DNA from: Geosiphon pyriformis uo1 | Lineage: Eukaryota; Fungi; Glomeromycota | Length of the DNA stretch: 64,000 bases | Direction: 5' to 3' | Assembly (NCBI GenBank): GCA_016748015.1 | Contig: JAAOMT010000258.1 | Coordinates: forward strand, 684,173 to 748,172 | In this document: piece after piece, positions 4,788 to 64,000 of the stretch | How the letters are laid out: each line of letters begins with the position of its first letter | How positions within the stretch are numbered: position 1 is the stretch's first letter | Notes under the pieces: model-generated | What the model saw: only the letters and a program-made list of their open reading frames with translations | The model's database searches: none | What the model was told of the DNA's origin: nothing | Program-made: the position numbers and the translations under genes

Positions 4788-4899
4788 TTATTAACTTTTT
4801 TTTCATATTTTGGTATTTATATATTTATTTTATATGATTTAAATTTTCATATGTAAGCTGTATTTTATAATAATGATTGATTTTAGATTTTAGATTTTT

Positions 4900-13200: not shown

Positions 13201-14099
13201 ACTTAACAAAATAATAATTTAACTTTTAGTATTTGTAATTTGATAATAGAAGTCAATTAAGTATTAAGTTAATTATTTTCTGGGTTAAATTAGTTATTAA
13301 TCTTTAAAGATTTTTCTGTTTAAAATTATATTTATTGAGTTTTTTGGTAATAAGATACAGAAATATGTTTTTTAGCAGTTTGTAGTTATAAATATGAACT
13401 TTTTTTTTAAGTTAATTAAGTATAGTTACTAAGATTTAATATTGTTTTTTTATCTTTTTGATAAATTAACAAGATAAAATTAATAGCTAAAACTAAGAAA
13501 AGCTTTTTTTTTATTAGACTATTATAAAGTTTATTCTTAAATAATCAATTTCCAATATTATTACTTTGTAAGAGAAAAATAAAAATAAAATAAAATAAAA
13601 TAAAAAGAATAAAAGCAAAAAAAATGTCATAATCAAAAATAATTGGTTCAAGTTATTAGAATTTTGAAGCTGTTTATTTTAATAGTATTTGGTCTAAAAT
13701 AAAAACAATTAATTTGATTTTAATAATTAGAATATTAAAATTATGTATAAGTAATTTGAAATAAAACGATTTTATTGAACTGATTTATTAATAAATATAT
13801 GATAAAATTGATTTTTAAGCTAAAATTAAGATATTTTTAATATAAAAATGATTCTTGTTTCTTCTTTTTTTCTTTTTATTTATTAAAACTACTTGTTTTT
13901 ATTTATTCTATTAATTTTTCAAAGAGTTAAATTTGAGAAAAAAAGTTTTTTGTTTTGTTATTTACAATAATTTTATTACTATTTTACAAAAAATTAATCT
14001 TTTTATAGTGAATTTAACAATTGTTTTTGGTAATATTGTGTTAAAAAAATATTTAAAAAAATAATTTTTTCCAAAAAAAAATTTTATTAAACAATATTA

Positions 14100-26166: not shown

Positions 26167-27379
26167 TGGTTAGGTGCTTTAGGGTAGAAGGTGATGTATT
26201 AGCGAGGGGGCTTGCGTTGAGAAAGTTTAAGATTCAAAATTGAGGAATTGAGAAGTTTACCAATCGGTAACACATAAATTTAATGATGACATCATGTGAT
26301 CTGGCTAGTTTCCCCAAAGATTGGCGATGTGAGCGAAGATCTTTTCAGATTTTGAACATTTATAAGTTGTGTATTCTCTAACAAACAAAAATACGTCTCA
26401 ATGCTAATTTCAAGTAGTTTTAAAAACTCATCTCGGAAATTGCTAAAATCCAGAAATACTGAAATTTTAGCAAAATATTGTACAAAATAAATTTAATTTG
26501 GTTTTATTATACAAATGTTAATTGGTATTAAGTTTTGTTGAATAATTAATTGGTTTTTGAAATATTAACAAAATTTGCATAAATAAAATGTGTTAAATTT
26601 TTTATTAAAAGCATATTTGAATTAAGCTGAAGAAATTAAATTTTAAATATAAATAAATTCTTTAATATTAATTATAAAACTATTTTTATTTTGGTTAGTT
26701 TAAATAATCTCTTAAGTATTTAACTTGTTGTTTTACAAAAACAATAAATAAAAATAGATAGAAATACAATATTAAAGATACAAATATTAAAAAGTAGATT
26801 CATTTTAAGAATGTTTTTTTATTAGAAATAATTATTTTTTTTACAATTTTAAAAAAACTGTAAATTTGAAATTAATATAAACTTTTTTTTATAATATTAT
26901 ATGTAATTTAACTAATAAAATATTTAAAAAAAAACTTGGTTTTATGGTATTACAAATGGATGTTTGGGTTTTTATTGAGTTTTTATAACTTAGTGCTTTG
27001 ATTAGTTAATACTAAAATTTGAAATTTTTTTTTTTTATATAATAAATAAAAGTTTAATAAAATATTAGATAATACTTGGTGTTTAACTTTTTTAACATAA
27101 TAACTAGTTTATTCTGGTATTTACACTCTTTTAATAAGCAATTTTAGTTTTTATAATATTTTTTACCAAACAATCTTTGATATTATAATCTTAATACTTT
27201 TTTTTAATCAATTAGTAAAATAAAATAAATAATTAAAAAATATAATAATAGAAATATAAATTAGTATTCTATTAATAATATTAAAATCAAAAAATCATTT
27301 AAATTTTAAGTTAAAACTTTTGTCATTTAAAATTATTAAAATATTTAATTTAAATTCTTAAAACAAATTTTTTGTATTA

Positions 27380-28700
27380 TTAGAATATTAATTATATTTT
27401 AATATTATTATTATTTTGTTTATTGTATTTAAAGTCAAAAAAAGATACAAAATAGCTAAACATTATAAATTTAATTTGTTTTAAATTTGAAATTCAGTTG
27501 GCTATTTTTAAATATATAAAAAACTTTGTTATTAATAAAAATTAAATAATTTAAAATATATTAGAATATTTATTTTATTGTTTTAATTAAAATTACTAAA
27601 AATATTTTTAAAAAATTTTGTTTAAATATATATTAACTACTTATAATAAGTTTAATGTATTTTATGAAAATAATTTCTCAGTTTTAAAAATATTTTAACT
27701 TAATTTTTAATTTTTGTAGTAGAATTTATTATAAAAAATACATTAAAAAAAATTAAAAACTTTGATAATATTGCAAAATATATAAAAATTTTATGATTTT
27801 TGTTAATTAGTATTATTTACAAAAAATTTTGATTAGAATTAAAATATGTAAGAGATTTATTAAATTTTTTAAAAATTTTTACAATAATTATGTTAATTAA
27901 ATTTTTAATTTAATTAATAATTATATAATATATAATAATTTAAATTAAAATAAGAGTTTTTTTTTAAATGATTTTTTATGATTTTTTTTGTGTAAAATTA
28001 AAAAACATAAGCATTTATATAATTATAGAATAAACACTAAATTTGTTTTTAAAACTGGCAAAATTAAAACTATAACTGGTTTAATATTTTACTTGGATAT
28101 TAAAACTTTTATTAATAATACAATTTAAATTGAAAATAATTAAACTATTATTTAATATATTTTAAATATTATTAATAAGTTAATAATATTTTAATTAAAA
28201 AAAAATTAAGATCTAAAAGTTAATTTACTAAAAAACGTTTTTATTTAAAATCTTATATTATCTATTCTTTTATAATTTAAATTTTTTAAGCAAATTTAAT
28301 CTAAAAATAAAACGTTGTATTATATTAGATAGTAATTGGACTGTATTTATAAATAAAAAAATAAAAAAATTTAACCAAATTATTAATGTAGTTACTGATC
28401 TAATTATTAAATCTTTTTTAAGAGTATATAAATAAGATTTTTCAAAATTGTAGAAAGTAAAATTTAAAACAAGAATTCACATTCAGATTAATTTATATAA
28501 AACAAAAATTTTGTTAAGTATATTAAATAAATATTTACTAAAAAATACAATTAATATCTAATATTAAATTCTAAAAATGCTAATATAAAGTATAGAATTA
28601 TATTAATGTGTTATCTTTTGTTAACTGTATAAACTATTTTTCTACTTTCAGATTCTTTTGTTATTTTTTGAAAAGAATAATGACAGAAATATTTATAAGA
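27380..28700 (+). mobile_element. Highly degenerate LINE ORF2 (reverse transcriptase region) relic; boundaries approximate
   Basis: Plus-strand remnants such as KTGKIKTITGLIF and NILIKKKLRSKS.L..../LYYLFFYNL...KQI*SKNK resemble fungal LINE RT C-terminal blocks after G>A/C>T erosion. Confidence 0.4.
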
Positions 28701-31700
28701 CTGATTTTATATATTAAATTTTTATTAGTTTAATTCACTTATTAAAGTTGAATTATTTTTATTATTATATAATACAATTTTTTCTTGCTATTTGTTAGTG
28801 TGTTATTTTTGACCATAACAATATTTTTATTTATCTTATAATTAAAACTTTCTAAATTAATTTTTGTATTATATTATATTTTTGATTTTGTTTTTACTTA
28901 AACTTTTTTAATTTATCTTAATAAATCTTTTATTGAATAATATTATAGAACAAATCTTGATATTTACAATTAATTGTAATATAATTAAATATAATTTTTT
29001 TTATCTGTATTATAAAAAATAGCAACTTCATTAATAAAGCAACATTTAACAATATTTTTTAAAAAAAAAACAGAAAAACAATATAAAAATACTTCATAAT
29101 ACCAACTTTAATTTATTAGTAGACACAAAAATAATGGTTTTTAAAAAAATAAAACGAATTCAAAAAAAATGGTCAAATCAATTTCTTTAAACATTGATGG
29201 CTTAATTTTAAAATATTGTTTCAATTTATTATAAATTATTATAGAAGAATCGAAGGTTACTTTTTTCGGTTTTGAAATCAACATCATGTTTTAAAATTTA
29301 CTTGGTCAATATATTGCTAATACAATTTAAATTTACAAAAGTACTAACACAAAGCATTTTTTCAATTCCTTTAATATTTAAATGTTCTTGAATGAATTAG
29401 TTTTATTTCTATTAATAAATTTAATATTATTCTTAATAAATAGATAAATATAATGTCTTTGAATTGTTTTAATAAGGCATTAATTGCTCAAGAAATGATA
29501 GCTAATATATCAAACAAATTTTATTTAATTAACAATTCAATAATTATTTTATTAATTTTAAAACTTGGTTTACAAAGTCTTTTTCATATTAATAATAAAT
29601 AATATCATGCGTGTAATTGATGAAAATTATGAAATAAGTTGTTTAAAAGATTACATTAAAAATTGCAACATGCTGGTTATCATAAAACACATAAAGCTGT
29701 AAGTCATAATTTTATTTAATTTTAAATTTAAATATTATATATTAATATTTTAGGTTATTACTCAATATAATTGGGCATCCGAAGTTTTATTAAAAAAGTT
29801 TAATACTACATATAATATATGTACAAATTAGTAACATTATTAACATCAACATCTATAAAAGTGATAATTTTATTAGAATTTATGTTATGTTGCAAAAATA
29901 AGAAATTTATTAATTTATAGATCAATTTTAGATAGAAATATAAATGAATTGTACATCTAAAAAATTATTTTACAAGATACTTATAAATATTTTCATTTTT
30001 ATAAGAAACAAAATATCTTTTAATAAATAAAAAGTCACAAAAAGTAATTGGTTTACATAAATAGTAAACGCAAAAATCAAATTGAAGATGATTAGACTTT
30101 TCCTTCCGGTCCCGGCGATTTTTAAATCTATAAGATTTCTCATATTTAATATTTAATGTTGATACTTTGAATTGATACCATATTATAAAAGCTAATCCAT
30201 ATTTCGATTTCGTGCTGTGACATAACATTTACATGAGTGAAGGGTAAGACTAATTAGTTTGACAATCTTAGTTGCATTAAAGACTTCATAGTTCTAATTA
30301 AGAAATTAGAATACATTAGGCAAATGAAAAAATAGGTGGATAAACAAAATGAGTGGCGGCAGGAATAAATAAGACTTATATTTACATTATTGCTTTCACG
30401 CTTTGCAAAGAAAAGTAAATAAAGTTTTTGGCAATCAGCTTTTTAAATGAATATATTACTTCATTAGGCTATTTGCCATAGAAGACCACATTCTGTTTAA
30501 TGATAAAAATATTTTAGATTACACAAAATAAACAAGGAGATAGAAATAAATATACTTGAATATTTTTTAGTGCTAAATCTCAAAACTCCTTTCAAAAACC
30601 TATCTTTTAAATTAGTTCATCGTCGAGACTTAAGATTTTCTAATGAATCGTAAACCGCAAAAATTTTTGATCTCATTTTAAAATATCTTTAATTTATTCT
30701 TCAAATTCATATTGAATTTAATTAACAAAATAGGGAACCACTTTAACATATATTTTTGTTTCTTAATTTTCATCTCCACGATGGTAAGTCTCTATAAATT
30801 TTTTTATATTAAAAACGGCATAAATAATAAATATGATTTCAAAATTTAAAGGGGACATTCAATGGTACTCATAAGTAAACAAGTAAGAAATAAAAATTTA
30901 TGTGTACAATCCTTTTGGAATTAATAGAAAAAGATCAAAAAAGAGATGGATTGAAAATGGGAATTTCAACATTCTTTCTTATATATGTATGGAGGAAACA
31001 AAATCTCAGCCGATGGAACCTATTAGAGTACGCAACAAAGGAACTCTGGGCACTTGATATGTCAATACCTTTTCAGTAGATTCACCACACCTTAAATATT
31101 ATGCTACGATTAGAAAGTGTTTTAATTAAAACCTTTAAATCTCTAAAAACCTATTATTGACTTTTATCTTAAAATTATAGTGGAAAATAATCTTGAGATT
31201 TAAAAAAATACATTATATATAATTAATAAACTAATTACAATATTCCTAATTGTTTGTGCACATTTTTTAGCTTCGTAATTTAATATACATACATTATTGA
31301 ATTAATTTCAGTTAATAAACTTAATTCAACATTTTAGAAATTTATAAATAAGCATTAATTATAGTGCTTAAATACTTTTAATCATAAATAGAATAAATTT
31401 TGATAAGATATTAATACCTTTATTTACTATATTTTTTAATAATAATAATAATAATAATAAAGCCTTTTTAATTTAAATTGATTAAACATATTAGTATTTT
31501 TTATAAAAATTTTATTTATATATATTGTTTATATAATTTAATAAAATTAAATATGGTATTGAAATTTTACAATATAATTGATTTTGAATTAAATAAAAAG
31601 ATTTCCAAAATATAAATTTAAAAACTTGTATCAAATCATATTTAAGAATATAGATTTTTCTAATCAGAATAATTTCTAATTAAGTTCATTAATATTTTTT

Positions 31701-36095: not shown

Positions 36096-37699
36096 TTACC
36101 ACCAGGCATCAACATTGTCAAGATCAGGACGACCACTTTTATTCATTGATTCTTAGAATGGCGTACAGATTGTTTAGCGGTTATTTTCTGATTATGATTA
36201 GTATCCCCGTTGGGCAAAAGATGAAGTAACTATCAGTTCGTCTTTATCATTGCTTCGTGGCGTCCAAAAAGTTCTTTGCGTTGAACACTACAACCGCGAG
36301 GTGGTTCATTATAGGAAGAGCCAGAGTTTGTGAATTGACTTAGCCATGGTCTAATTCCATCATCAGCTTCCCTTTTATTTCTCCATGGTATATCAGGGCA
36401 ATTTTCATTAATGTCGCTCCGTAGCCTATCTTTTTGGGATTCCCTTGCAGGCCATAGACTCCTGAGAAAAGGTTCGTTGATTAAATATCGGTTCAATGAC
36501 TTCCTGACTTCCTTTATTGAATAAAAGTTACCGCCACTTGGATAGTTCCCAGCTTTATTTTCTAGTCTAGTCTCTCACGGTTTATTATTATTATTATTAT
36601 TAAAATTCCAGTCTCCACCGAGGCATATTCGAGTTCCAATCACCTTTAGGACTTAATCGCTCTTTATTAGCCCTGGGCTTATGATTATTTCCCAGGGCAC
36701 ATTCTTACTCCAGTCGTCACTACTCAGGTTATGATTGGAGCCCATCCGTCACCAGAAGCATCATGGACTGATTTTGTTTCGTTTTTTGTTTTCCCAAGGT
36801 ACTTTATGTGAATTCCAACCGCTCCCATCACCAACATCATTTGCACAAGGCGCTTTTTCAGTTTCCCATGAAGCTTTCCAGGATTCCAATTATTATCACC
36901 ATCTCAAAAAGGATCACTACCTCTTTCAGAAGGACAATCTCTAATCGTATGTCCTTTATGCAAACTAGTAATTAGATTTTTACTCTGATTTGTATTATAA
37001 ATCGAAAAAATCAATAATTGAAATCTACCTTTGCCACTTTTAGTACAGATGATTGGACACCTTTCGAATCACATGTATGATTTTGAGAAAAGAGGCATTA
37101 GTTACTAGTATCCGAGAGAAGGACAAGATTATTGCTTTTGACCTATATTCAGCGTAATAGTCGGGCGCTCTTCTTAATTGGATTTTCAAGTGATCAGTTT
37201 AAGAGGAATTTTTCAAAGTTTTTTGTCTTACTTTGTCCAATGATCACAAGAACCATAATTTTGGTAAGTCAAGGGAGGTACTTCTAAAAGTTAATAATGA
37301 ATTTAAAAGATTTGGTTCAGGACAATCCCTAAAAGCGAGTATATAAAATAAATTAACATTGATAAATTAATCAAAAGAAACCATTTGATACATACTTTCC
37401 AAGATGGCCTTTGGCTTTACAATTGAAGCACATAGCTTCGTGATTATCTCTTAACGGGATCTGAGGCGCCAACACCGACAGTTCGGGGAAGCCAAGAATC
37501 GCCCATTACAAGGTTGGCAAGATATCTTTCCTTTCAAGCCGATATAGGTTATTATTAGAGCTGATGTTAATTATCACTGTACGTCTAATCCAAAAAAACT
37601 TCCCAAGGCCACAATGTGAGCAATACACTTCGAGTCTCTGATGAAAACACTATTTGTAAAATTTTTACCCTAAAAACCCACCTGCAGACCGATTTTCAT
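36096..37699 (-). pseudogene. Disrupted gene with CCHC zinc knuckles and a Trp/Gly/Asn-rich C-terminal region
   Basis: Spliced remnants CFNCKAKGHLGK|DCPE and ICTKSGKG|HTIRDCPS, with GT-AG introns splitting the knuckles, followed by GSGWNSHKVPWEN, DDWSKNVPWEN and GDWNSN. Stops and frameshifts throughout. Confidence 0.55.
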
Positions 37700-38068
37700 G
37701 GTCCAATTCTGGGAAAACGAAATATATAATTAATGCATTAGTACTTAAGAGAAATGTTCCAATAATCGTTTTCAATAACTATATAGCATTGAACCAGGAA
37801 CTATCCTTCAGACTAGCAGTCCCAGCTTGCATCAGCGTCGAACTAGCAGTTCATTACTGTTGGACTAAGTTCTTAACTCATTCAGGCATCAAATTAACAT
37901 TATATCCCTAATAAACAAATTCAGAGAACTCTTACCCTATCTTGTTAACAGCAAAATTATGATAGACACCTGACGCTCAATAAATTTTGGTGCCACAAAT
38001 GCATGTGAAAAGAAGATTTTTGTAAAAATTTTTCTAGTCTCATTTTTCACGGTTACGCGTCTTCAAAA

Positions 38069-40743
38069 ATGTCGAACGATAATGAACCTTACTCAGGTTA
38101 CTCCGGTAAGTTTTATATTAAATGACTCAACTTCCGATCCAAAATTTCTTTCTAATAGATCCTCTTCAGTTCTCGCCTCCTACTTAAAGGACCGTGAAGC
38201 TTGGTCATTCTATGGTTTCCTAAAGTCTCACCGTAATGTTATTGTAAATTCACCACCCTTTTCAGAAAAATGGGAAGGCCTTGAGAATGCATGGGCTACT
38301 CGTTTTTTGAGGGCCGTCCAAGAAATTATTCCAAATAACTATAAGGCTTTGGGAATAAAGGTTTTATCTTTCTATTTATAAAGATTCTTATTGCAAAATC
38401 AAATATAGCGAAAGGGGGCTCCTGAACGGTTGTCGGTCGTTCAGGGGTATTCGGTTGTCGGTCGACCCAAGTAATGATGGTTGCGCTCCTGGTCGGTTGT
38501 CGGTCGACCTTGGGTATCCGGTTGTCGGTCGGGCGCCATCATTGCGACTTGCTAAGATTTGCAAGATCGAGAAAATCTTTCATAATTTGGTGTTTGAAGT
38601 TTTTATGTTACAGTCACAAAACGTTGTCATTCTATTGTCTTCGCAATAGGTAAAGTCTGAATGCTTAAATCAAGGGTTAAAGCTTTATTGGGATGAAATA
38701 GTGCGTGAGCGAAAAGAAGTGAGTCAAATCTTAGATGTCATTTGATTGCTCTGATTATTATAACTAACGTAATCTATTATATAAAATAAGTTGTCGGTTG
38801 AGAACATACATGTTACTGGCAGTCTCGATCTGTTAGGTAAAGTCGGGAAGTATAATATTCAAAAATTAGGATCAAAATATCCTGAAAATCCGAAGCCAGG
38901 AGATGGTTGTCCAAAAAGGTAAGATTATTTGGGACTTATTAAATTTAAAGTTTATCCAAAGCTTTTTACTTACACTCTGGACATGATCTTATATTTTGAT
39001 GAAGCTTAGAACAACCCACATTGGGGAAAAGACGAAACACAAGCCATTGTGAGGAAGAGGTACAGATGCATATATTTTTAGCTACAATTATTTTGTCATT
39101 TATTTATAATGAAAACTACACTTTAGAATGATCAAACTGAGCAAAACATTCTGTCAGAGACAAAACGGACGAAAACTACAATTGTGGATGATCATAAAGG
39201 CAAGACAGATATTGTGGAGGACCATACAGATGAGATCGAAGACAATGAAAATATTGAATTTGATCTCGATTCACTTATCAGGAGTCTGCAACAAGAATTA
39301 ATATACGAAGTATTAAATTTTGGATTCCTTATTTTCCTGTTTTATTTTTATTAAGAGTTCTTCACATCAAAAGTTGCGGACGTATTTACACTTCGACTGC
39401 CAGTGTCATAGTTTTACTGGCGGCCCAAGCTATTGCCTTGGATATTAATCCCAATGACTTTTTTTGTGAATTAGTGGAAAGTTGGGAATATAAACGTTTC
39501 ACAAAAATTTCGTGAATATCAGCAAGAAGTTCTTAAAAAGCTTAAGACAACTAAATTAACTTGGCATAATACATATGAAATATTGTAAGTGTTGTGAAAT
39601 TTATAAGTTTGAAAATCACAATTATGCTCACATGTAAATGTAATTTCGCATTCACTTTAGGGCACTTTCATCCATTATTGTGCTTTGCCGAAGCTGTCCC
39701 TATCCAAATTATTTTACTAATGAAGAATGGCAGATGATAACTCAAACAAATCCACATACAATCCATGAACAAGTGATACCAGCCTCAGCATCAATTGCTT
39801 TACATGAGGCTGTGGTCAAACATTTGTCAGGCCAGGACAGTTATATGCATGCTGATGAAACTCCAATGAGCAGAGCAGTTGCACGAACTTTCAATGAGTT
39901 GTAGGTTGATGTTCTTTTTATTTTAATTTATTTAATAGAATTTAGTCAACAGAATTTATTTAACATATTCAGACGAGAAAATGTACCTGATCTTGCACCA
40001 CAAAAAACTTCAGAGGATGAACATTGTTGTCAATATTTGCATCCTTATATACGTCCAATTTTTCTGAAGAAATACAAGGATTATGAAGTGCAGTTGAATC
40101 GTGCTATCAAGGGCACAAGGCAAAGACCTGATCTTTCTTGTACCGTGGATACGGTACCTTTATTAAATTCTGAAGTTAAGCCATTAGGGTCGAGTACCCT
40201 AAAAAAGAAAAAGGATTTTGCAAAAGTTAATTTGCGAGCAAGGAAGACAATCAATCAGCTATTGACCTTGAAAGGTGGTCCAGGAAAAACAGCAATGCTC
40301 CTTAACTTTGGTCTGTTTTATTATATTGCTACCAGCTTGTTATCTTTTATTACTAAACAATTTATTGGAATTAAAGGTGATATCGTTCAAACATATTTTA
40401 TGGACCTACAATTTGATGGATTATATCGATCATGGCCTTTTCTCACAACAAAATTGGTAATTGACGAGCCCAGTTTACCTTTGATTGAGTCAAATATTGC
40501 TCATTTTGTGGCCTTGGAGGTATTTCATATTTTTCTTTATATATATATCATGTATTATTCTTTATATATATATATCATGTTTTTTTATTTTAAAATTTTC
40601 AATAAATATCTGCCCAGAGATGTGTAGGTGAACTTGCGAAAGATTATAAAAGTCGAAGGGTTCCATTCACACCACCTTTACAAATTCGGTATATGCGTAG
40701 TATTCCAGACTCTCCACAGATCCGTAACATGTTAGGTTTATAA
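38069..40743 (+). CDS. Intact ~539-aa protein with a C-terminal PD-(D/E)xK restriction-endonuclease-like domain (Crinkler/REase-type family), 11 exons
   Basis: Exons 38069-38105, 38170-38360, 38650-38718, 38791-38918, 39005-39059, 39127-39309, 39475-39584, 39661-39900, 39973-40310, 40377-40519, 40618-40743 join via GT-AG introns into one 1620-nt ORF. Motifs SEDEH...QRPDLSC...NSEVKP...KDFAKV. Basic NLS-like LGKRR and KRTK. Confidence 0.8.
38376..38585 (+). ncRNA. Putative structured intronic RNA: basal helix enclosing two three-way-junction modules with four GUUGUCGGU loops
   Basis: CGGTTGTCGGTCG at 38427, 38452, 38494 and 38519, each closed by a stem. Compensatory changes between modules. 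Basal pairings AAAGATT/AATCTTT, TTGCAAA/TTTGCAA, TAGCGA/TTGCTA. Confidence 0.7.
39361..39470 (+). ncRNA. Putative structured RNA element in intron 6 of the nuclease-fold gene
   Basis: Outer stem TTCACA/TGTGAA, AAAAGTTG/TGACTTTT and GGA/TCC encloses hairpins CTGCCAGT/ACTGGCGG and CCAAG/CTTGG. The 3' arm ends at 39470, just before the TTAG acceptor. Confidence 0.5.
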
Positions 40744-41348
40744 GGGATTGTATGAAGAATGTGGTTTTGATTTTTAACTATATGCCTATTTTATTGTGTT
40801 TAAAAAAATAAAATTTTTGGCAAATGGACTCATGTGTTGTACTGAATTGTGTGAAGTCAGTTTTTTGTTGAAATCAGATGTCGTCAATCTGGCTAATATA
40901 TTAAGCTATTATTAGTAAATTACAAAAATAAGGTCATTTTTAAGACATTTTGGTATGAATTAATTCTCATTAAATAACTAGTTATACGGAACAAGGCAAT
41001 AAAAGGCTTTAACCATTATTTAGTTTTAGACCTGTTCATTTTGAGTTCGTCTTGCTTTAATCAAAATTAACCAAAAGGTTTATTTTTAGACTAAAGGGAT
41101 AAGGGAAAATCCTTATTTTTCGATAAAAAAAAGGAGGGTCTTTGTCCCGAGGGATGTTCAAAGTTTTGGAGAGTATAGGTTTAAGATAGGATGGAATGGG
41201 AGCTATTCGGTCGTAAAGCTCAAATATATATATCGAGTTTAAAAACGATTAATTGTCGCTGTTTGGACTAGTATTTTCTAAATAAAAACTTTAAAATGTC
41301 TGGATTAATTAAATGAAATAAATTAGACCTAGCAGTTGAAATTCCTTT

Positions 41349-50574: not shown

Positions 50575-53500
50575 ATGAGCGGCAAAAATGTTGCTTCAAT
50601 TCATTATCCAAGTTGTCAAGTGAGCTGGTTAAATTTAGTTTATGCCGAAATCATTTCAGTTACAAGTGCCATGAGAAAGAATTCAAGGTGGTCGGGGGTG
50701 AGCATCAGTCGGCTAAACATGGGTGGACTTGGCATGAGCATGGGTTTACGAGGAAGAAGTGCGATCACAGAAGATTCTTATCAAAGCCAGGTATTAAACT
50801 AACTCATATAGAGGGCACACGAAACTCTCCATAACCTTTGAGCTTGCCTACCTCAAGTCAACAACCTTTACGTCTTTTAGGAGAGCCCTTTGATGACAGG
50901 TTTCTCTAACCTAAGAGTTCAATTATCTAATGTATCTGGTCTGTATAAGATAAATTAGTCGTATGATTGCATAAAAAAATTTATTGATCCCAGGTTTCTT
51001 TTTTCAGATGTTCGTGAAATTGATGCCCTTGCCTTACTGGAACCGTTTTTGGAGGTGATTCGTTCTGGAGATACAAATGGTCCAATAACAGCGACAGCCC
51101 TTAGTAGTGTAGAAAAATTTCTAACATATGAAATTATCAATATCAATTCGCCAAATATTTCAATTGCGATGTCTACCTTGTCATCCGCTGCTACACATTG
51201 TAAATTTGAACCAAGTGACTCGGTTTCGGATGAATTTGTACTTTTGAAGATTTTGCAAATATTACGATTGGCGTTGACCAGTGATGTTGGGCAGGTTTTG
51301 AGTGATGAAGCTTTATGCGAGATGATGGAAACAGGCTTGAGCATGTGCTGTCAAATGCGTTTAAGTGGTACGACCTCCGATTGTTGAATCGTTTACGGAA
51401 TCCTTTATTCTCCCATCCTTTTATTTGCTTAAAATCGATTTAGTTGAAACATCTCCCACCTATAAAGTGATCTGAATAAAATATTTTATATATATTTAGA
51501 GATGCTTCGTCGCTCTGCTGAACACACAATGATTGTCATGGTGCAATTCATGTTTCAAAGATATGATGATTATGAGAAGGGAAAAGATAAAGGTACAACT
51601 CTTGAAGCACTTTATAATCCCCATAAATTCCTCAAATGGGTAATTTTGAAGTGCTATTTTTAAGGTTTGCCTTGTTTAAATCTAATTTATATTCAGACAT
51701 AAAGACTTTCGGCCTTCCTTCAATAAAAGAATTGCTCCGCGTCCTAATTTCCTTACTTGATCCTCATAATCATAAGCATACCGATACTATGCGTCTAATG
51801 GCACTCAGCATTTTGAATGTGGCATTCGAAGTGGGTGGTCGAACTATGGGTCATTTTGAATCTTTGAGGAATCTTGTCGCAGATGAACTTTGTAAATTCT
51901 TATTTCAGGTGAAACATTGAGGGCTTAGCACTAAAATACCAAATATTTCTGTATTTTTGCGCTAATTTATACTAATACCATTCAAATGCTCTAGCTTGCA
52001 CGAACAGATAACATATTACTACTATTGCTCACTCTTCGTGTAATATCAACGGTTTTTGATACACTTCGCCCATACCTCAAACTTCAACAAGAATTATATT
52101 TATCTTTTCTTATTGAAAGATTGTGCCCGCCCACAAACAATTTTCGTAACTTAGAGATCAGCTTAGAATTTAACGGTTCTCTAGTCAGCATTGATTCCCC
52201 GCTTTCGTCAGGAATGTCGACCCCACTTCATGATAGAAATTTGCGTTCTAGTGGAGATTCTTCGATAGCGACGGGAGAAGCTCGAGAACTCTTATTAGAG
52301 TCTTTAGGGCAATTGGCTCGAATGTCCACTTTTATGGTTGATTTATGGGTGAATTATGATTGTAATTTATATTGTGGGGATTTATTTGAAGAAGTAGTCA
52401 AATTCTTAAGCTGGGTGAGTTTGATCTTCTGCAAGAACTTTTATCATTCATTTTCTAAATGCCATTATCGTTGATGTTTTAGAACTCCTTCCCTGATTCA
52501 ACAGGGTATTCCGCTAGCAACTCGCATATTCTTTGTCTTGATGCTCTCCTACTTTATGTAAACTATATGGCTGACCGCTTACAAACTGAGGTATTATCAG
52601 GCTCATCTACATTTCTATGAAAGATAAGTTTTTATAATGAGATTTCATTAATAGAAAATAGGGGAAGATTTCCTGACCTCTGAATTATCGTGGGATCCAT
52701 CATCTGCAACGGATTATAAATCTGAGTCCTCGGTAAGTAATTATTAACTGAATTTGATAGGCCTAAAGAAAAATTCTTTTCTAGAATTACCGTCGCCTTT
52801 TTTTTTTGGTTCGATTGACTTCTCATGGATCTCAATATTGACCACTTGCTCACACTTTAACTTTATTGGCTCTTACTTTTATTCACATATTGGATAATAA
52901 GAAATACCCTTCCCCCGTCGATCTTTTGGAGAAAAAGAAGAAAAAGCGAATTTTGATAGAGGGTGCTGCCAAATTTAACGAAAATCCTAAAGTTGGTCTG
53001 GAATTTCTCGAAGGTAAATGACGTGAAGAAATGAATCCTTTTGGTTTGTATCTTTGTCCCCTCTCTAACATGTGATTGGAAGTAGAATTTATTGAAACTT
53101 ACCGTGAATAATATCTAAACAGCAAACAAGATTATCTACAACGATCCTTCTATGGACAAAAGTACTAGTCTTGCATCCTTTCTTAAGGTCACTCCCCGCC
53201 TAAATAAAAACCTTTTAGGTGATTTTCTTTCGAAGCCTTCAAACATCGACATTCTCAAAGCCTTTGTGAAGCTTTTTAATTTCAATGGGGTATGTAACAC
53301 GGCTCAATCATCAAAAATTGTTACTTCAAATCAATTAAAATTCGAAGATCTTGTAGAAAAGAATTGATGAAGCTATGAGGGAAATGCTCGAATCATTTCG
53401 ATTGCCCGGCGAATCACAACAGATATCGAGGATAATGGAAAATTTTGCCGAGATCTATTTCGCATCTGGGCCACGTAAGTCTGATATTGAGAATTTTTTC

Positions 53501-56500
53501 GTATTGATTATTAAATTTCCTAATACTTTCAATATTTCACATCTAATTTAGCTGAGATCGCGACTCAAGATGCCACTTTCGTTTTGTCTTATTCTGTCAT
53601 TATGTTAAATACAGATCTACATAATCCTCAAGTCCGGGTAATAATTACATGATTATAATATTAATTCGCTTCTTTTCAAAACTAAAAAGTTTTGCATTAC
53701 TTAAAACAAGTTGTTTTGCAGCGTCGAATGACAATACAAGATTACATGAATAATCTTCGTAATGTAAATAATGGGGAAAACTTTGCTCCCGAATATTTGG
53801 TGCGTTAATATTAGTGGGACAAATATTTAAAGCAAAAGTTTTGTGCTTTTCTGTATTTGCTGATTTCCTGAAAATTCTTTTAGCAAGCCATATATGATGC
53901 TATTCGACAAAAAGAGATCGTGATGCCAGAAGAGCATGAAGGACAATTAGGTTTCAATTATGCTTGGAAGGAGCTCTTGCGTAGAGCCGAAACTTCCGGT
54001 AATTAGGTTTCATAGTTGGACTTATGGCCATGTATATCTCACAGCTCTATAATTACGCTAATCCCAAAATCTCTGAAATATAAGGTCCATTGGTCATCTG
54101 TAATGTTTCATTGTATGACAAAGACATGTTCACTGTTGTCTGGAAACCTTTAATTGCCGCTATCGCTTATGGTATCTTTAAAATTTTAGTTTGTTTTAAG
54201 GCAAATAACGTTGGTCTTGACAATATTCTTCGAATATATGCAGCATTCAACTCCGCTCCTGATGACACCATTCTTCAAAAAGCCATTACCGGATTCCACC
54301 AATGTGCTCTTATATCGGCACATTATAATTTACTAAATGTTTTCGATTATATCATTATGTCTCTTGGTAAAATGACTGGTTTACTTGATAGCCGATATTC
54401 GATTGAAACTGCAAATATTCCGGTTAAAGTTCAGGATATTGAGCTACCGGTTAGCAATCTAGCAATACAATTTGGAAGAAATTATAAAGGGCAACTCGCA
54501 GCTGTTGTATTGTTTGCTGTTGCTAATGAACATGGAAGTGTTCTTAGGGATGGCTGGAAATATGTATGTTTTTTTTTTAATGAGTTCTTTATATCTTTCA
54601 AATCACTGCTAACCCTTTATAATTCAGCTTTTGGAAATCATCAAAAATCTCTTCCTCAATTCTCTTCTGCCAAGTTCTATGTTGCAAGTAGAAGATTTTT
54701 TGGCTGGTACAACTACAATTCCCCTCAAGCCAAAAAGCGCGTCACTTCCAAAGCAGGAAAGAGCCAATGATAATTCTTTACTATCAACACTTTCTTCATA
54801 TCTGCTATCTCCTTATTCAAGCAATTATGAGTCTACCCGAAGTGACCCCACCGAGGAGGAGATTGAGTCAACATTATGCACAGTTGACTGTGTTGCAGTT
54901 TGTCGCTTAGAAGAATTATTTGCCGATATCAGGTCAGTATTCCAAATATTTTAACGTTCTAACCCTTCTTCATGCTGATATTAATCTTTAAATTTCAAAA
55001 AGGGTATTGGAACAAGAGTCTCTGGAAAATCTTATGAACTCACTTAAATTTATTGCCGATGGAAATTTAACCGGAGATGCTAAAACAACTCCACGTTCTT
55101 CAAGTCCCGTCTCTATAACTCAACCCAACGCTTCACAACCTTCATCTCATAGTAGCGCGATGATACCCTATGATCCTGCGGCCATCTTTTTCCTTGAACT
55201 AATGATTAATGTTACCTTGCAGAATCGGGATCGTATTCAAACCTTATGGTATTTCTCCATTCTTATAATTTAATTCTTCAAATTTCCAAATTTCAGGGAC
55301 CCTATTAACAAAATATTTGTTAATGCTACTTTTAAGGCCCATACTTTTTGAGCATATCTCACAGATATTAAAAGAATCCCAAAATCACAGCATTTTGTTG
55401 GTAGAAAGAACAGTGGTCGCCCTTTTGAGATTGTGTATTCGACTAACACACAAGGTAAGAAATGTAAGTTGATTGAAACTTGGTTTTCTTTCTTTGATCC
55501 GTTCTATCCTCTAGGATGAAATGGCTTCAGATGTTCTTAAATCATTGGAGCTTTTGAAAGCTTTGCCACTTGAAGTAATCAATTCAGTAGGGGAACAAAT
55601 GATGGCTGGAATATTAAACCTCATAAAAGCGGATGCCTCTTATATCAGGTAAAAGAATTTATTGATTAATAATTATAAATATTTTTTATTAACGGCAACT
55701 GAAATTTTATTAGAGGAAAAGCACTTTCGGAAACTATCTTTGCTCTCCTTAGTTCTACATCAAATCATCCTCAAGCATGTAAATATTCTTTTGATGCAGT
55801 CGCTTCTTTGGTGATCGAATACAAGAACATCAGTACTCATAATTTTAGTGAGTGCGTTGAGCTTCTGACAGATTTTGCCTCGGCGGCAACTTTAGTCGCA
55901 CAACGTGACAATTACCAAGATAATATAAAAAATCCGAGGATTCGTATAACAAAGACGTAAATAGCATTGAATTTTTTTTAACTATTATCCAAAACCAGGT
56001 GATTAATTAAATTGGAAATTTAGCCAATCCGCAGTGATTGAAAGGGCTCGTAAAGCTGTCGAGCTACTATACCATCTTTATAAGGAAATACCCAAATTGC
56101 TCAACGAGACTGAAACCTCATCACGTGAAGGTGAGTCCCGAGGAAACATTTTAACAGTATTGAAAATAGTCATTAAATTTTGATATTGGTAGCTTGGTCA
56201 ACATATTGGCTTCCGATTTTAACTGGCCTCAGTCAACAATCTTACAATCCTTGCCGTGAAGTCCGGCAATATGCCATAACTTATCTCCAGCGAGCACTCT
56301 TAGATCCAGAACTGGTATCACATGGCGTATCTGAATGGGTAGTCATATTCGACGTTGTTCTATTCCCCTTACTCGATCAACTTTTGAAGCCAGAAATTTT
56401 TGAAGCAGACCCTGTTGGTATGGAGGAAACTCGGATGAGAGCTTCGGCTTTATTATGCAGAATATTTCTGCATTATTTGAACAAACTGATCGAATGGGGT

Positions 56501-57095
56501 GGATTATTGTCATTATGGTGTCAAATATTAGATGTCATGGAACGGTATATGGATACGGGGGAAAATGATTCATTGGTAAATGAAGAATTTTGATCGTTTT
56601 CCTTTCTTATTTCTGCTTTATCTTAACTTCCTCTTCAAACGTTAGGCTGAGGCGATCTCAGAATCTCTCAAAAATATGCTTTTGGTGATGTCTACTTCGG
56701 GCGTTCTCAATCTTCCAGCTCCACCAACATCACCCTTGCCGGAAATATCTGACGAGGTCAAGGGCATTGGCCGTACACCTATTGATTTGTGGGATATAAC
56801 ATGGACTAAAATAGGAAAATTTCTTCCTAAGCTTAAAGAAGAATTATTCCCAACAGTTTCCTCATCGATGACATCAGCTGAGGCAATCCCCAACGAATCA
56901 GCGTCTGGTTCTCAAGCTCAGTCAGGGTTTGAAATTATTGATCGGGATGCGTCTGAAAACTCTAATAATGCCTTGACCCTTCCCCTTCAACCAGTCAATA
57001 TTGTGGCTAAATTCGAAAACTCGACTGCAGGACAATTGCATGATGGTGGTTCTAGTACGAGCACTAGTGTATCAGATGATGTAATCATCGTTTAG
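50575..57095 (+). CDS. GBF1: Large Sec7-domain ARF guanine-nucleotide exchange factor, GBF1/Gea1/2 subfamily; many exons
   Basis: DCB region ([46 protein letters not shown]), HUS box (VDLWVNYDC), Sec7 ([38 protein letters not shown]), and C-terminal HDS blocks ([49 protein letters not shown]). Confidence 0.95.
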
Positions 57096-57659
57096 TTCTA
57101 CCTTACTATGCTAATGCCCAATATAAAATTTTCATGCAAATTTTCTATGCTGAAAATATTCTTGTGATTATGTTTATTAATTTCAGGAGGTATTGGTTAA
57201 ATTCTGTATCTTGTAGAAAATTTTGAAATATTTCTCATTATCTACGAAAATGTTGTTATTTAGTTTCTTATTAATTTATTAATTGTATTAGTTTATCTTT
57301 TTTTTGACAAACAAAAATATGTAAAATTTAAATTTAAAATATTAAAACCCAAATTGTTAAAACTTTTCAATTTTAATTAAAATATAATTTGATATTTTTA
57401 AATTCTTAATTATTTTGTTTTATTCACGTTTGTGGATCTAAATCTTATTATCTTGAGCAAATCTAGTTGACATTTATATTATACACTTGTCGCCCTCATT
57501 TACATAGTAGAAACTATTATTTCCCACAGTATGCCAAAAGCAAAATATATAGAACCACACAGAAGCTCGCTTATTTGTCATTAATTGAACCTCGAATGTT
57601 ACAATATTTCCCTTTGTAATTGATAAATACTTAGATTAAAAGTGATAGAATCTATATTT

Positions 57660-57952: not shown

Positions 57953-58099
57953 CTAAAAAAATAAAAAATTTATTAATTTTCAAAATAGATTTTATTTTGT
58001 TGATTTGTAATAATTAATTAATTAATATTATAAATCTAAGATAAGATTTGATTTTTTAAGCGATATATTTTTCAAAAAAAAGTTCTTTTTTATATAATT

Positions 58100-58410
58100 T
58101 GTTGTAACATCTAACTTTTTTTCTTTTTTTCTATTATTTTGACAAATTAAATATATGTTTTAGCAAACTACAAGTTATTTTAGCAAACTATTAAATATTT
58201 TGGTAGACTGTTAAACATTTTGGCAAATTTCTAAATATTATATAATTTAAAATATTGTTTAATCTAATTATTACATTTAGATATATTTATGTATTATAAA
58301 AATTAGATGATTAATTAAATAATAATAATTGATAATTTGACTAAATAATAAATAATAAAATAAAAACAATATTATATGCTAATTAATAATAGGAGTTAGA
58401 AGAATAATTT
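58100..58410 (-). repeat. Partial copy of the ~990-bp LTR family
   Basis: ttagcaaactacaagttattttagcaaacta...gataatttgactaaataata...ttatatgctaattaat aligns with 4480-4750 in the same orientation. Confidence 0.6.
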
Positions 58411-59959
58411 TATACTAATTAATAATTCTATTTTTGTTTAATAATATAATTTTTTCTTTAAGATTAAAATCCAAGTACTGTCTGTAATTTCTAAATAATA
58501 ATTCAAAATTATTGAAGTATTTATTTGAAAATTGTTAAAATTTCAGTTTTATAAGCTTTTTAATATATTAAATCTTCAATAGTTATAGTACTGAATTTTG
58601 TAAAATATTTTTACAAATATTAAAGAAGTCATAAAATTCAAAAACTGCTTTAATTTTATAATGAGTATTTATTAATCCAATTGCTGTTTTAAATTCATTT
58701 TATCCGTAAATAAGAATATATTCATTATTTTATTTACTAAAACACTATTAAAGTTTCTATTAAATTGTAATATTCGATAAAATATTAATAGAAAAAAACA
58801 TTTGTCTTTTTTTAAAACTTGCTTCAAAAATTATGTTAAGTAAATTTCAGAATAACTTTTTGTGTTTTTTTTAAACGTAATAATTTACTATTAGAGTTGT
58901 TGTTTTTTTGAATATAATTAGTTTAACATTCAATAATTGTTATAAATAAGTTAAAGAGTATTTTTAATACTAACATTAATTTTTGAAATATTTGTTAAAT
59001 CTTTTGAAAAATAATTATTAAAAAAATTTTAAAAGAAATAACAAAAATTATTTTTAATATGTGTAAGTTTTATATATTTTTATTTCAAGAATTTTTTTGA
59101 TTATTTGATTATTTTTGTTTAAGGTTTCAATTATTTTTTGTTAAATAAATAAAAAATAATATAAATTATAATTAAGTATTAAGATTTGAGTACAATTTAT
59201 TAACAATTATTGGTTTAAAGTTTTAAAAAATATTTTTGGAATTAATTAAAAAAAATTGTATTTCAATTTATAAAATTAATAATTTAAGATTGGTTTTTAA
59301 ATAATAGTATTTTAGTTTATTATTATAAAGTCTTAACTTGTATATTCTATTGCTTAAAACATAGTATATATAAAATAATTTTTTATATTTATAATTTTTT
59401 ATTATATTGTTTTTTAGTTTTAGTTTTATATAAAAAACTTTATTTTTAACTTTAATTTTTAAATAACTAATTAATAAATAAGATTTATCTATTATTTAGT
59501 ATAATATAATAATAAAATATTTTAAATTAAATACAAATTATGTATTTGTTGTATATAATCTGCTACTTGAATCAATTAAAACAACATTATAAATTTATTA
59601 AAACTCTTATACTATTGCTTATATTAGAATAAAATAAACACAATAAACATGTACTAAAAATAATTTTATATATTTTATAAATACCAAGCATACAAATAAT
59701 TTTATCTAACAACAAAATAAACAAACCAGAAATTAGGAAAAAAACAGAGCTATTTAATACCAAAATTTTTTTTTTAAGTATTATTTTATGTTTAAATCTA
59801 ATTAATTATAATTATTACAATAATCAGCAATTATATTATAAACAAAATTAATTATTCTGATTATAATCATCTTATTACTATTAAAAATCAAACATATTTT
59901 AATTAACCAATTTTTAAAACCAACTTTTTTATAAATAGCCTATATATAATATTTTAAAT

Positions 59960-60520
59960 TATGTAATATTTAAAAATTCGCCAAATATTTAATAATTTAC
60001 TAAAATAATTTATAGTTTGTTAAAATATTAACAAAAAAAATATTAAATTATAAAATAAAACTATAATGAGTTGTATAAAAAAATATTTTAACTTAAATTT
60101 ATTACAAAAATTAATTAATTATAACAAATTAACAAAATAAAATTTATGTTTTGAAGAACCAAATTTTTTATAATTATTATTGCTTTAAAATTCACAAATT
60201 TTAACTAAAATTTAAAATTAATTAGCAACAAATTTCAGTAATTATTTAGTTAATTCCAAATTTAAACCAAACACATTTTTTTAGCATTTTTTTATTATTT
60301 ATTATTTTTTATATTATTAAATAACTTATAGTTAAGATTATTTGTAAAAAAGTTAACTTTATTATAAAATAATTATAAACATTAAAATAGTTTATAATTA
60401 AAAATTTTTGTAAAAAGTTTACTCCTATTGCAAAGTAACTATATAAATAATTGATATAAAATTGGCTATTTTATTTTAAATCTAATAACACAAATTATTT
60501 AAAGTATAAAATAATACTTT
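59960..60520 (+). repeat. Partial copy of the ~990-bp LTR family
   Basis: aataatttactaaaataatttatagtttg...aaagtaactatataaataattgatataaaattggctattttatt aligns with 15150-15780. Confidence 0.65.
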
Positions 60521-63500: not shown

Positions 63501-63900
63501 TACAAAAATTAATACAATTACATATTAAACTTATAAAATTATAATTATAATTGGCCAAATTTATAATTATTATTTTTAAATTCAAAACTTTGAAAAATTA
63601 TTATATATTAATAAAAAACTTGTGATAATAAGTACTGTTTTAAGTATTAAAAATTTAAATTACTTTTTTTGGTTTAAATAAAAGTTTTATTTAGTTTATT
63701 GTATCTTGTTCAAATGTGTTCAAGCCTAATAAAAAAATTAATTTTTAGAAAAACAAATTCAAGGTATGGTTTTGGTTGCAATTGACTAATCATTTAAAAA
63801 AATCTGTAAAATTGTAACAAATTACAAAATTTAATCATCTTATGTATCTTTTAGCAAATTTTTTTTTTGCTACAAATCATTTTGGCAGAAGCAAATTAAT
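60520..63900. mobile_element. Extremely AT-rich decayed retroelement sequence, not resolved to families
   Basis: Very low GC, almost no CpG, no ORFs >60 aa. Same texture as the identified relics and adjacent to an LTR copy. Confidence 0.4.
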
Positions 63901-64000
63901 TACTTAGTTTGTTAAAACAAGGTCTTTATAATGTTTCGTTGGAGGTTCAAATCGGATAGCAGTGATTATCCTTGCCTTGGGATTATGTTTACGCTGTTCG

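Follow-up and report, generated by a model that had tools for sequence, protein, structure and literature searches.

Does this locus encode a nuclease together with its own intronic RNA partner, or a nuclease-like protein whose introns have no part in its action? The initial annotation favored the former and proposed that structured RNAs in the two largest introns, produced 1:1 with the mRNA, could act on the enzyme or switch its splicing. From our analysis, we think it probable that the gene is an expressed member of a Glomeromycotina-restricted family with a nuclease-like C-terminal half and that neither of its large introns acts as a partner of the enzyme. Positions are those of the 64-kb stretch of DNA that was analyzed (the window), and the features are collected in Table 1.

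Table 1. Features of the nuclease-like gene and its transcript
Feature	Position	Strand	Remarks
Gene of 11 exons, 539 codons	38069..40743	+	frame and GT..AG splice sites computed
Exons 1-6	38069-38105, 38170-38360, 38650-38718, 38791-38918, 39005-39059, 39127-39309	+	
Exons 7-11	39475-39584, 39661-39900, 39973-40310, 40377-40519, 40618-40743	+	
5' module, exons 1-6	38069..39309	+	partial copies in genome; no relatives of exons 1-5 detected outside own genome
Intron 2 of the model, 289 nt, donor GTTTTA	38361..38649	+	present in assembled transcript
Two modules of ~47 nt, 67 nt apart, forming a GC-rich (60%) repeat element	38409..38546	+	in intron 2
Intron 6, 165 nt, spliced, conserved position	39310..39474	+	165-nt GT..AG skip in RNA
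Conserved C-terminal module, exons 7-11	39475..40743	+	helical region, then predicted PD-(D/E)xK nuclease-fold core
Putative active-site residues, exon 9	40013..40180	+	near-invariant family columns
Transcript contig of 1496 nt, run X1	38374..40473	+	intron 2 sequence and exon 3 unspliced, then exons 4-10 joined

Gene model and C-terminal module

The frame is open from the ATG at 38069 to the TAA at 40741-40743, through all 539 codons and 11 exons of the GT..AG model. In RNA-derived contigs from run X1, introns 1 and 3-9, 8 of the 10, are each marked by an exact GT..AG joint. Intron 10 and exon 11 were placed by homology only, and the RNA contigs end before both. Exons 6-11 have matches in homologues and orthologous loci, and exons 7-11 can be matched exon by exon to homologues and in-genome paralogs. 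As first annotated, introns 2 (43% GC) and 6 (35% GC) are the largest of the gene; the remaining eight measure 64 to 98 nt, with 15 to 30% GC. The gene had also been described as adjoining pseudogenes, but we found no other piece of its family within the window, and the degraded copies lie on other contigs. There are six family loci in the genome, at least three of which are truncated or broken.

An exhaustive search for the family yielded 114 cluster representatives, and every named one came from Glomeromycotina (Racocetra, Cetraspora, Entrophospora, Ambispora, Dentiscutata, Gigaspora, Diversispora, and Rhizophagus clarus). An earlier search for homologues of exon 9, restricted by a length window, had returned three short fragments only. 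Protein identity of the C-terminal module to orthologs in other genera is 75-94%.

We modeled the fold on a natural homologue, P0009, and aligned the exon peptides of the window to it as separate rows. The AF2 model of P0009:113-428 (pLDDT 85.1, pTM 0.87) shows the order alpha-beta-beta-beta-alpha-beta (H130-146, E154-157, E170-174, E177-185, H191-216, and E221-228). With VIA-align, chains of the REase fold matched this model at Z 10.2 to 4.4 over residues ~113-290. The best match was BpuSI (Z 10.2, 147 aligned, rmsd 3.9), with further matches to DrdV (8.3), HsdR (8.2 and 6.5), a putative REase-domain protein (7.9), and TT1808 (6.7); SgrAI, EcoRI, Vsr, Hjc, NucC, and Can2 were also matched. 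In the fold check that had been proposed at the outset, Foldseek of the same model against the PDB returned nothing at E <= 0.001, and the wide VIA-align was needed for the fold to be recognized. A profile search of PDB sequences with the family alignment produced no match at E <= 10.

The hallmark of PD-(D/E)xK enzymes is D...(D/E)xK on strands 2 and 3 together with an acidic residue in the first helix. The core fold was found in the homologue model and the E/D/ExK set in exon 9 of the window. The latter consists of the Glu of SEDEH (40013-40015), the Asp of RPD (40130-40132), and the Glu (40172-40174) and Lys (40178-40180) of SEVK. These residues are near-invariant in the family and align with E130, D169, E183, and K185 of the modeled homologue; there they occupy the beginning of helix 130-146 and strands 170-174 and 177-185. 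Taken together, the C-terminal module is predicted to be a PD-(D/E)xK fold of the HsdR-N/type IIG kind with its E/D/ExK set intact, in agreement with the nuclease domain proposed initially. None of the putative metal-binding and catalytic residues is missing, so the domain most likely cuts nucleic acid.

No Pfam model exists for the family; HSDR_N (PF04313) was found below threshold in 10/30 and 12/83 members (best E, 4.6e-5), with P0014 scoring 16.9 bits against a gathering threshold of 25.1 bits, and it did not match exon 9 of the window alone. An ESM Atlas neighbour carries PDDEXK_12. The N-terminal nuclease domains of HsdR and type IIG/IIL enzymes (BpuSI 3s1s, DrdV 7lo5, and HsdR 3h1t and 2w00) were the best structural matches, at Z 10.2 to 6.5. 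They share the core fold and element order with the modeled module, including the Glu in the first helix, the Asp at the start of strand 2, and the ExK on strand 3, and the subthreshold HSDR_N matches run over the PD...ExK stretch. In contrast to these enzymes, the fungal gene is eukaryotic and intron-rich, has no helicase or methylase partner domain, carries a helical region of ~110 residues before the nuclease core, and has no sequence match to Pfam threshold or to any PDB chain.

A link to Crinkler/RHS-type effectors had been suggested as well, and it holds as a resemblance only. Among the structural neighbours in the ESM Atlas, the Crinkler Pfam domain is present in 17% of the members of one cluster (TM 0.54). 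In Rhizophagus irregularis, REase domains form the C terminus of Crinkler (CR) effectors (PMC6131194, citing Zhang et al. 2016). The gene is similar to these in its PD-(D/E)xK-type C-terminal module behind a variable N-terminal part and in belonging to a multi-copy family of arbuscular mycorrhizal fungi with many broken copies. In contrast to CR effectors, the Crinkler header (PF20147) was found neither in the window exons nor in any of 83 family members.

Distribution of the intron elements

The nuclease module is preceded by a lineage-specific 5' module. The 5' module has no Pfam match and, by inspection, no signal peptide at its N terminus. Contigs C404 and C520 carry degraded duplicates of parts of it, with a stop in exon 2 of the C520 copy, and the orthologous loci lack exons 1-5. 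Atlas look-alikes of exon 2 among Csm6 HEPN clusters (0.89) were treated as noise, with recognition below the reliable range.

About 90 nt of intron 6 (roughly 39327-39460) are a lineage-specific, single-copy insert that is unique in the genome and missing from five paralogs and three orthologous loci (L022, L131, and L132). At these three loci, the equivalent intron is ~76 nt long, and DNA similarity resumes at 39461. The core of intron 6 has 47% GC versus 38% in the exons and forms one 9-bp hairpin (z -2.95). Intron 6 is an ordinary intron that gained ~90 nt of unique sequence, and it is cleanly spliced out of the RNA. A 51-codon open frame at 39357-39509 looks protein-like. We rejected intron 6 as coding there: the frame had no paralog or ortholog match and a subthreshold Atlas score (0.81), and the stretch is spliced out.

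The element of intron 2 contains four identical 12-mers, GGTTGTCGGTCG, at 38428, 38453, 38495, and 38520. They are spaced by 25, 42, and 25 nt within two diverged 47-nt modules; their expected count in the window is 0, and they are the only ones in the 128-Mb genome. TRF found no tandem array at 38300-38700. Both introns had been annotated as holding GC-rich folded elements. The intron 2 repeats are real and GC-rich, but the fold of the intron (-59.4 kcal/mol) reached only z -1.9 against shuffles, of which 9/200 were as stable, and intron 6 is barely GC-rich. The antisense strand of the intron 2 element scored better than the sense strand (z -3.4), which suggests the symmetry of a DNA-level repeat and not a strand-specific RNA. 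Rfam 15 gave no match for intron 2 or intron 6 (E <= 10, 37900-40900).

Three copies of the element were found in the genome, every one within a copy of intron 2. Because of this low number and placement, we rejected a dispersed MITE-like repeat as its identity. The other two copies lie in the degraded 5'-module fragments on C404 and C520, which lack the nuclease domain. These paralog copies are a degenerate three-unit version that is 25 nt shorter, and the 25-nt difference falls between direct repeats. Identity to the C520 copy is 91% in the element, 96% and 88% in the flanking intron, and 92% in exon 2; by this comparison, the element is conserved no better than the intron around it. It is missing from the five in-genome paralogs and from the same three orthologous loci that lack the intron 6 insert. 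In these sequences, the element travels with the 5' module and not with the nuclease. We envisage a low-copy, hairpin-forming repeat that would have grown by local duplication or slippage and would be evolving like the surrounding intron. The 12-mers are perfect here and degenerate in the two dead copies, which could stem from selection acting on the live gene instead of a recent duplication.

Paired copies of GGTTGTCGGTCG within 8-35 nt also occurred at 56 loci of a metagenome collection and 52 loci of a prokaryote-genome collection, mostly from high-GC bacteria (median GC, 0.65). Two such arrays were inspected and proved to be microsatellite-like repeats of 7, 14, 21, or 35 nt. As these arrays are unrelated to the element, the paired loci were rejected as its origin or homologues.

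These distributions bear directly on the proposed nuclease-RNA system. In bacterial type III toxin-antitoxin (ToxIN-like) systems, an antitoxin RNA of tandem direct repeats lies upstream of an endoribonuclease of the ToxN/AbiQ/CptN type. The present gene is similar in that a nuclease-fold ORF and a hairpin-forming repeat RNA share one transcription unit. A fifth 9-mer, GTTGTCGGT, at the very start of exon 4 might count in favor of such a system, but it is coding sequence common to the C404 copy. Unlike the type III arrangement, the element is intronic in a eukaryotic gene and not a series of tandem whole units upstream, the predicted enzyme fold is PD-(D/E)xK and not a ToxN-type RNase, and processing is unsupported. 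The RNA element and the enzyme also do not co-occur across the family: the nuclease is found without either element in the five paralogs and three orthologs, and outside this gene the intron 2 element occurs in nuclease-free fragments only. The system reading fails by a refutation that the initial annotation itself had named: the RNA elements do not codistribute with the nuclease family. Its weakness extends to intron 6, whose insert is unique, unconserved, and spliced out, and to intron 2, whose fold is not strand-specific and which, like intron 6, has no Rfam family. In our view it is therefore extremely improbable that intron RNAs, produced 1:1 with the mRNA, serve as an antitoxin or decoy for the nuclease or as its scaffold or guide, and neither of the large introns is an RNA partner of the enzyme. 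Such a system would be remarkable for a fungus, if true, but the distribution data speak against it.

Intron 2 in the assembled transcript

Two contigs describe the 5' half of the gene. A short one joins exon 1 to exon 2 (38104/38169). The long one is colinear with the DNA over 38374-38718 with 0 gaps and is the sole contig entering exon 3; it keeps intron 2, while introns 3-9, all seven downstream, are removed. RNA containing intron 2 is thus present. The joint of exons 2 and 3 (38360/38650) was not seen in the run X1 contigs, and 38217-38373 has no contig cover, although holes of this kind in contig cover prove nothing. Since the joint was not seen, the intact 539-codon ORF is established from the DNA and not from RNA. 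The uninterrupted 11-exon frame of the initial annotation therefore stands as genomic sequence, but at the RNA level the contig with exon 3 retains the intron. Exon 3 (69 nt) exceeds the assembly word, so the contig could merge k-mers from two molecules, those spanning intron 2 and exon 3 from pre-mRNA and those spanning exons 3 and 4 from mature mRNA. A form with exons 2 and 3 spliced may exist, even as the main mRNA.

Reading through from exon 2 into intron 2 leads to a TAA stop at 38379-38381, and an in-frame TAG (38647-38649) directly precedes exon 3. Once intron 2 is retained, the frame closes six codons past exon 2, and the nuclease ORF has its next in-frame AUG only in exon 8. We believe that intron 2 is most likely a poorly spliced, repeat-laden intron. 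The conserved nuclease module sits behind a 5' extension that was copied piecemeal to two other places. On this account, the length of intron 2, its weak donor, and its self-pairing core of 60% GC would have a visible effect on splicing. The repeat would then be the cause of retention, and retention would lower protein output. A regulatory role for retention is possible.

Retained or "detained" introns of eukaryotes cause unproductive mRNA isoforms. Intron 2 resembles them in persisting in an otherwise fully spliced RNA, in bringing an early stop, and in being the longest and most structured intron, with a weak donor; the likeness rests on a single assembled contig. We examined the idea that intron 2 is detained in a regulated manner and that its hairpin array gates the amount of full-length nuclease mRNA, perhaps in response to conditions or to the nuclease protein itself. 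Only where the element is joined to an intact nuclease gene do all four 12-mers agree, and the sense strand of the element is 16 kcal/mol more stable than the antisense strand, both of which would fit, as would the stop and the selective retention. However, the evidence for retention consists of assembled contigs from one run, the element shows no better conservation than its flanking intron, and three copies are too few for covariation. Its lack in all other family members and orthologs also means that the family does not need it. Regulated detention is unlikely on this balance. Of the three roles suggested initially, only an effect on splicing gained any support, through the retained intron in the assembled transcript; an autoregulatory switch would go beyond this. 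Bolder still, the hairpin array might be a functional cis-element that delays splicing and so meters a potentially self-damaging nuclease, with the protein itself perhaps recognizing the GUUGUCGGU hairpins. We hold this to be very unlikely; if true, a nuclease restrained by RNA from its own locus would here have a eukaryotic counterpart that works through splicing.

The same long contig could also be taken for a transcript that begins inside what we call intron 2. The GC-rich repeat would then be a structured 5' leader, exons 1-2 would form a separate or minor upstream unit, and the protein would start at the first in-frame Met (exon 8) and be essentially the nuclease module. The contig does start at 38374, 13 nt inside the intron, close to a TATA-like TATTTATAAA at about 38373-38382; its mean depth is 228 versus 57 for the exon 1-2 contig, and the orthologous genes are wholly without exons 1-5. 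However, contigs give no levels, transcript starts, ends, or local depth. The TATA-like stretch is itself inside the contig, which places the start of the RNA farther upstream. Poor translation would be expected from a leader of >1 kb that has many upstream AUGs, and exons 3-7 are open in a frame continuous with exons 1-2. We judge an internal start to be quite unlikely.

Finally, the gene could be a decaying chimera in which the 5' module was recently joined to a family member, the intron-2-retaining RNA is nonfunctional, and the gene is turning into a pseudogene. At least half of the family loci in this genome are truncated or broken, as noted above, neither of the other two copies of the 5' module has escaped degradation, exons 1-5 are without relatives elsewhere, and the exon 2-exon 3 joint is missing from the contigs. 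Set against this, all codons are open, all catalytic and near-invariant family residues are kept, eight introns are precisely spliced, and the C-terminal module is 75-94% identical in protein sequence to orthologs in other genera. Decay therefore seems improbable to us, and we retain the reading of an expressed gene with a poorly spliced intron 2. A modest question remains, namely whether a structured, repeat-bearing intron limits the expression of this gene through retention.

The family to which the gene belongs has no Pfam model or characterized member and is restricted to arbuscular mycorrhizal fungi. Given this restriction, it is a reasonable candidate for a lineage-specific nuclease, either related to selfish elements or effector-like, and the predicted fold of the C-terminal module provides a concrete basis for an enzymatic assay.

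Gene model and a conserved nuclease-fold module

The initial annotation described an uninterrupted 11-exon frame with oversized introns 2 and 6, and this description was confirmed in the rebuilt model. Once ten GT..AG introns are removed, 539 codons are open, and introns 2 and 6 are the largest, with the remaining eight measuring 64 to 98 nt at 15 to 30% GC. The gene lies within a gene island at 35 to 57 kb of the window, where islands of 32 to 45% GC alternate with extreme AT-rich blocks of 8 to 17% GC (1-7000, 9000-17000, 27000-30000, and 58000-64000). An open-frame series at 51000-57100 (+), with a match to the HUS domain PF12783 at 52025-52471 (E 7e-12), belongs to a large multi-exon Sec7/BIG1/Mon2-type gene and looks like an ordinary housekeeping ARF-GEF.

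Gene model and intron features (window positions; exons rebuilt from sequence)
Feature	Positions	Strand	Size and GC
Exons 1-4	38069-38105, 38170-38360, 38650-38718, 38791-38918	+	
Exons 5-8	39005-39059, 39127-39309, 39475-39584, 39661-39900	+	
Exons 9-11	39973-40310, 40377-40519, 40618-40743	+	
Intron 2	38361-38649	+	289 nt, 43%
Repeat element in intron 2	38409-38546	+	
Intron 6	39310-39474	+	165 nt, 35%

Homology searches used single exons as queries, one by one. Exon 9 (112 aa), searched against 1.84 billion representatives, gave 114 clusters at E <= 0.001 and 12 at E <= 1e-30. All named relatives that we looked up were Glomeromycotina (Racocetra, Cetraspora, Entrophospora, Ambispora, Dentiscutata, Gigaspora, Diversispora, and Rhizophagus clarus). 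Exon-by-exon comparison defined exons 7-11, together with the last part of exon 6, as the conserved unit and found no match for exons 1-5 outside their own genome. Homologous gene models run without a break across the exon 6-exon 7 junction, and paralogs preserve the exon order. Introns 7-10 align alongside the exons, at ~76% DNA identity over 39461-40738, to one Cetraspora (L022) and two Racocetra (L131 and L132) loci, so that the source organism is probably a near relation of the Gigasporaceae, even with an assembly of only 128 Mb. At least three of the six family loci in the genome look truncated or broken. On contig C718, two members lie ~60 kb apart (2317695-2317898 and 2377794-2378117), one of which aligns with residues 3-71 of exon 9 only.

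Pfam gave nothing at threshold for the family, and the Crinkler header was absent from all 83 members searched. HSDR_N, which is the type I restriction enzyme nuclease domain, covered the PD...ExK stretch in 12 of the 83 at sub-threshold scores (best E, 4.6e-5). We modeled a natural homologue, P0009:113-428, rather than the window protein, using an alignment of 24 relatives to which five exon peptides from the window were added, each in a row of its own. The model (mean pLDDT, 85.1; pTM, 0.87) has a helix at 130-146, strands at 154-157, 170-174, and 177-185, a helix at 191-216, and then more strands. Foldseek found no match to it in the PDB. VIA-align against 48,161 chains returned a consistent run of restriction-endonuclease-fold domains over residues ~113-290: BpuSI (Z 10.2; 147 aligned, rmsd 3.9), DrdV (Z 8.3), an HsdR fragment (3h1t; Z 8.2), a putative REase-domain protein (Z 7.9), TT1808 (Z 6.7), and EcoR124I HsdR (Z 6.5), with SgrAI, EcoRI, BsaWI, Vsr, Hjc, NucC, and Can2 further down. 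Since Z 7-8 is a common best score even for models without a relative, the fold call leans on three things: the matches agree with one another, the best of them scores above 10, and the motif is present. In the alignment, the window's E (SEDEH), D (RPD), and E and K (SEVK) occupy near-invariant family columns, and these residues fall at the canonical places of the PD-(D/E)xK fold. An Atlas neighbor carries PDDEXK_12. Taken together, these data support the nuclease fold and motifs first read from the sequence; nuclease activity is an inference. The enzyme would work like members of the PD-(D/E)xK superfamily, of which it is probably a distant one, with HsdR-N and type IIG nuclease domains nearest.

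Distribution of the intron elements

The intron 2 element contains four identical copies of GGTTGTCGGTCG (0 expected), the sole occurrences in the 128 Mb genome. The copies sit in two modules of 47 nt, spaced 67 nt apart, and the core that contains them is 60% GC. A compact structured RNA had been proposed here. The repeat element is real, but given its base composition the sense fold is unexceptional (z -1.9, equalled by 9 of 200 shuffles). The antisense strand does better against its own shuffles (z -3.4), which is what DNA-level repeat symmetry would give. Rfam had no match to the element, and nothing pointed to a structure under selection.

A dispersed repeat was ruled out, as the element recurs at just two other loci, each a copy of the same intron. 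On contig C404 the copied parts are the upstream region, some of exon 1, intron 2, and exons 3-6; the copy stops 65 nt into intron 6, beyond which lies AT-rich sequence without ORFs. On contig C520 the copy runs from exon 2, which holds a stop, through intron 2 into the beginning of exon 3. The nuclease module is absent from both. In both, the element is degenerate, with three units, and is short of 25 nt that direct repeats flank in the window, as is typical of slippage. Compared to the C520 copy, the element is 91% identical, versus 96% and 88% for the flanking intron and 92% for exon 2, and thus has no extra conservation.

Two further observations concern these copies. Identity to C404 is 88 to 98% over a stretch of ~240 nt at 37654-37894, upstream of the start codon, and lower, at 75%, across exons 3-6, which suggests uneven divergence or gene conversion between the copies. 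On C520, a 48-aa open frame (L018:4973-5116) lies ~1 kb downstream of the degraded copy. Its match to the Cas12f1-like TNB domain (PF07282; E 4e-8) is above threshold, and it looks like a TnpB/Fanzor-type fragment; this hints that the 5' module (exons 1-6) may have travelled with, or been moved by, a mobile element.

The initial annotation considered the intronic RNA as an antitoxin, decoy, or guide for the nuclease, with co-distribution across the family as the check. The 9-mer GTTGTCGGT and the 5' module are both absent from five paralogs and three orthologous loci. A fifth GTTGTCGGT at 38790, common to the C404 copy, is the last base of intron 3 plus the first eight of exon 4. Two-copy scans for the 12-mer in metagenome and prokaryote collections gave 108 loci, mostly in high-GC bacteria; the two arrays inspected were microsatellite-like repeats of 7, 14, 21, or 35 nt with no further likeness, and these loci were treated as unrelated. 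Given the lack of co-distribution among both paralogs and orthologs, the antitoxin, decoy, and guide readings are very unlikely. The enzyme is not an analogue of type III toxin-antitoxin systems.

Intron 6 likewise lost its proposed role as an RNA partner. It is spliced out of RNA in a contig of the public run X1. At all three orthologous loci, DNA similarity reaches 39326-39333 and picks up again at 39461, the equivalent intron being ~76 nt; in three in-genome paralogs it is ~100 to 135 nt and without similarity to intron 6. The extra ~90 nt, single copy in the genome with a 9-bp hairpin (fold z -2.95), is a lineage-specific insert within an ordinary intron.

Retention of intron 2 in assembled RNA

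Run X1 contains 46% of the sampled words of the stretch, and its contigs were mapped to 37900-40900. A tool classed X1 as probably DNA, yet eight exact GT..AG skips on this gene imply that the contigs come from spliced RNA. Exons 3-10 are joined as modeled in a contig of 1496 nt, which confirms introns 3, 4, 5, 6, 7, 8, and 9. Another, short contig does the same for intron 1, and coverage stops short of intron 10 and exon 11. Such contigs are evidence of presence, never of absence, and carry no levels, starts, or ends; the hole at 38217-38373 proves nothing. The 1496-nt contig is colinear with the genome at 38374-38718, that is, intron 2 minus its first 13 nt running unspliced into exon 3, although exon 3 (69 nt) is long enough for the assembler to fuse pre-mRNA words with mRNA words. 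No 38360/38650 joint (exon 2-exon 3) was listed among the contigs over 37900-40900. If intron 2 stays in, the frame that begins at the ATG ends at TAA 38379-38381, six codons beyond exon 2; an in-frame TAG (38647-38649) directly precedes exon 3, and exon 8 holds the next in-frame Met. The frame is open in the spliced model, but the assembled RNA keeps intron 2 with its early stop.

Because intron 2 is the sole intron still in the assembled RNA, the idea of a splicing switch, with retention used for regulation, keeps some life. The simplest account is poor splicing of intron 2, which is long, has a weak donor (GTTTTA), and pairs strongly with itself in its core. On the contigs of one run, retention may serve regulation or may simply be a flaw in a gene put together only recently.

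REase-bearing Crinkler effectors have been reported in Rhizophagus irregularis (PMC6131194). Those effectors have a header, whereas the gene under study does not, but in both the nuclease module is attached to an N-terminus that varies, and the family is multicopy.
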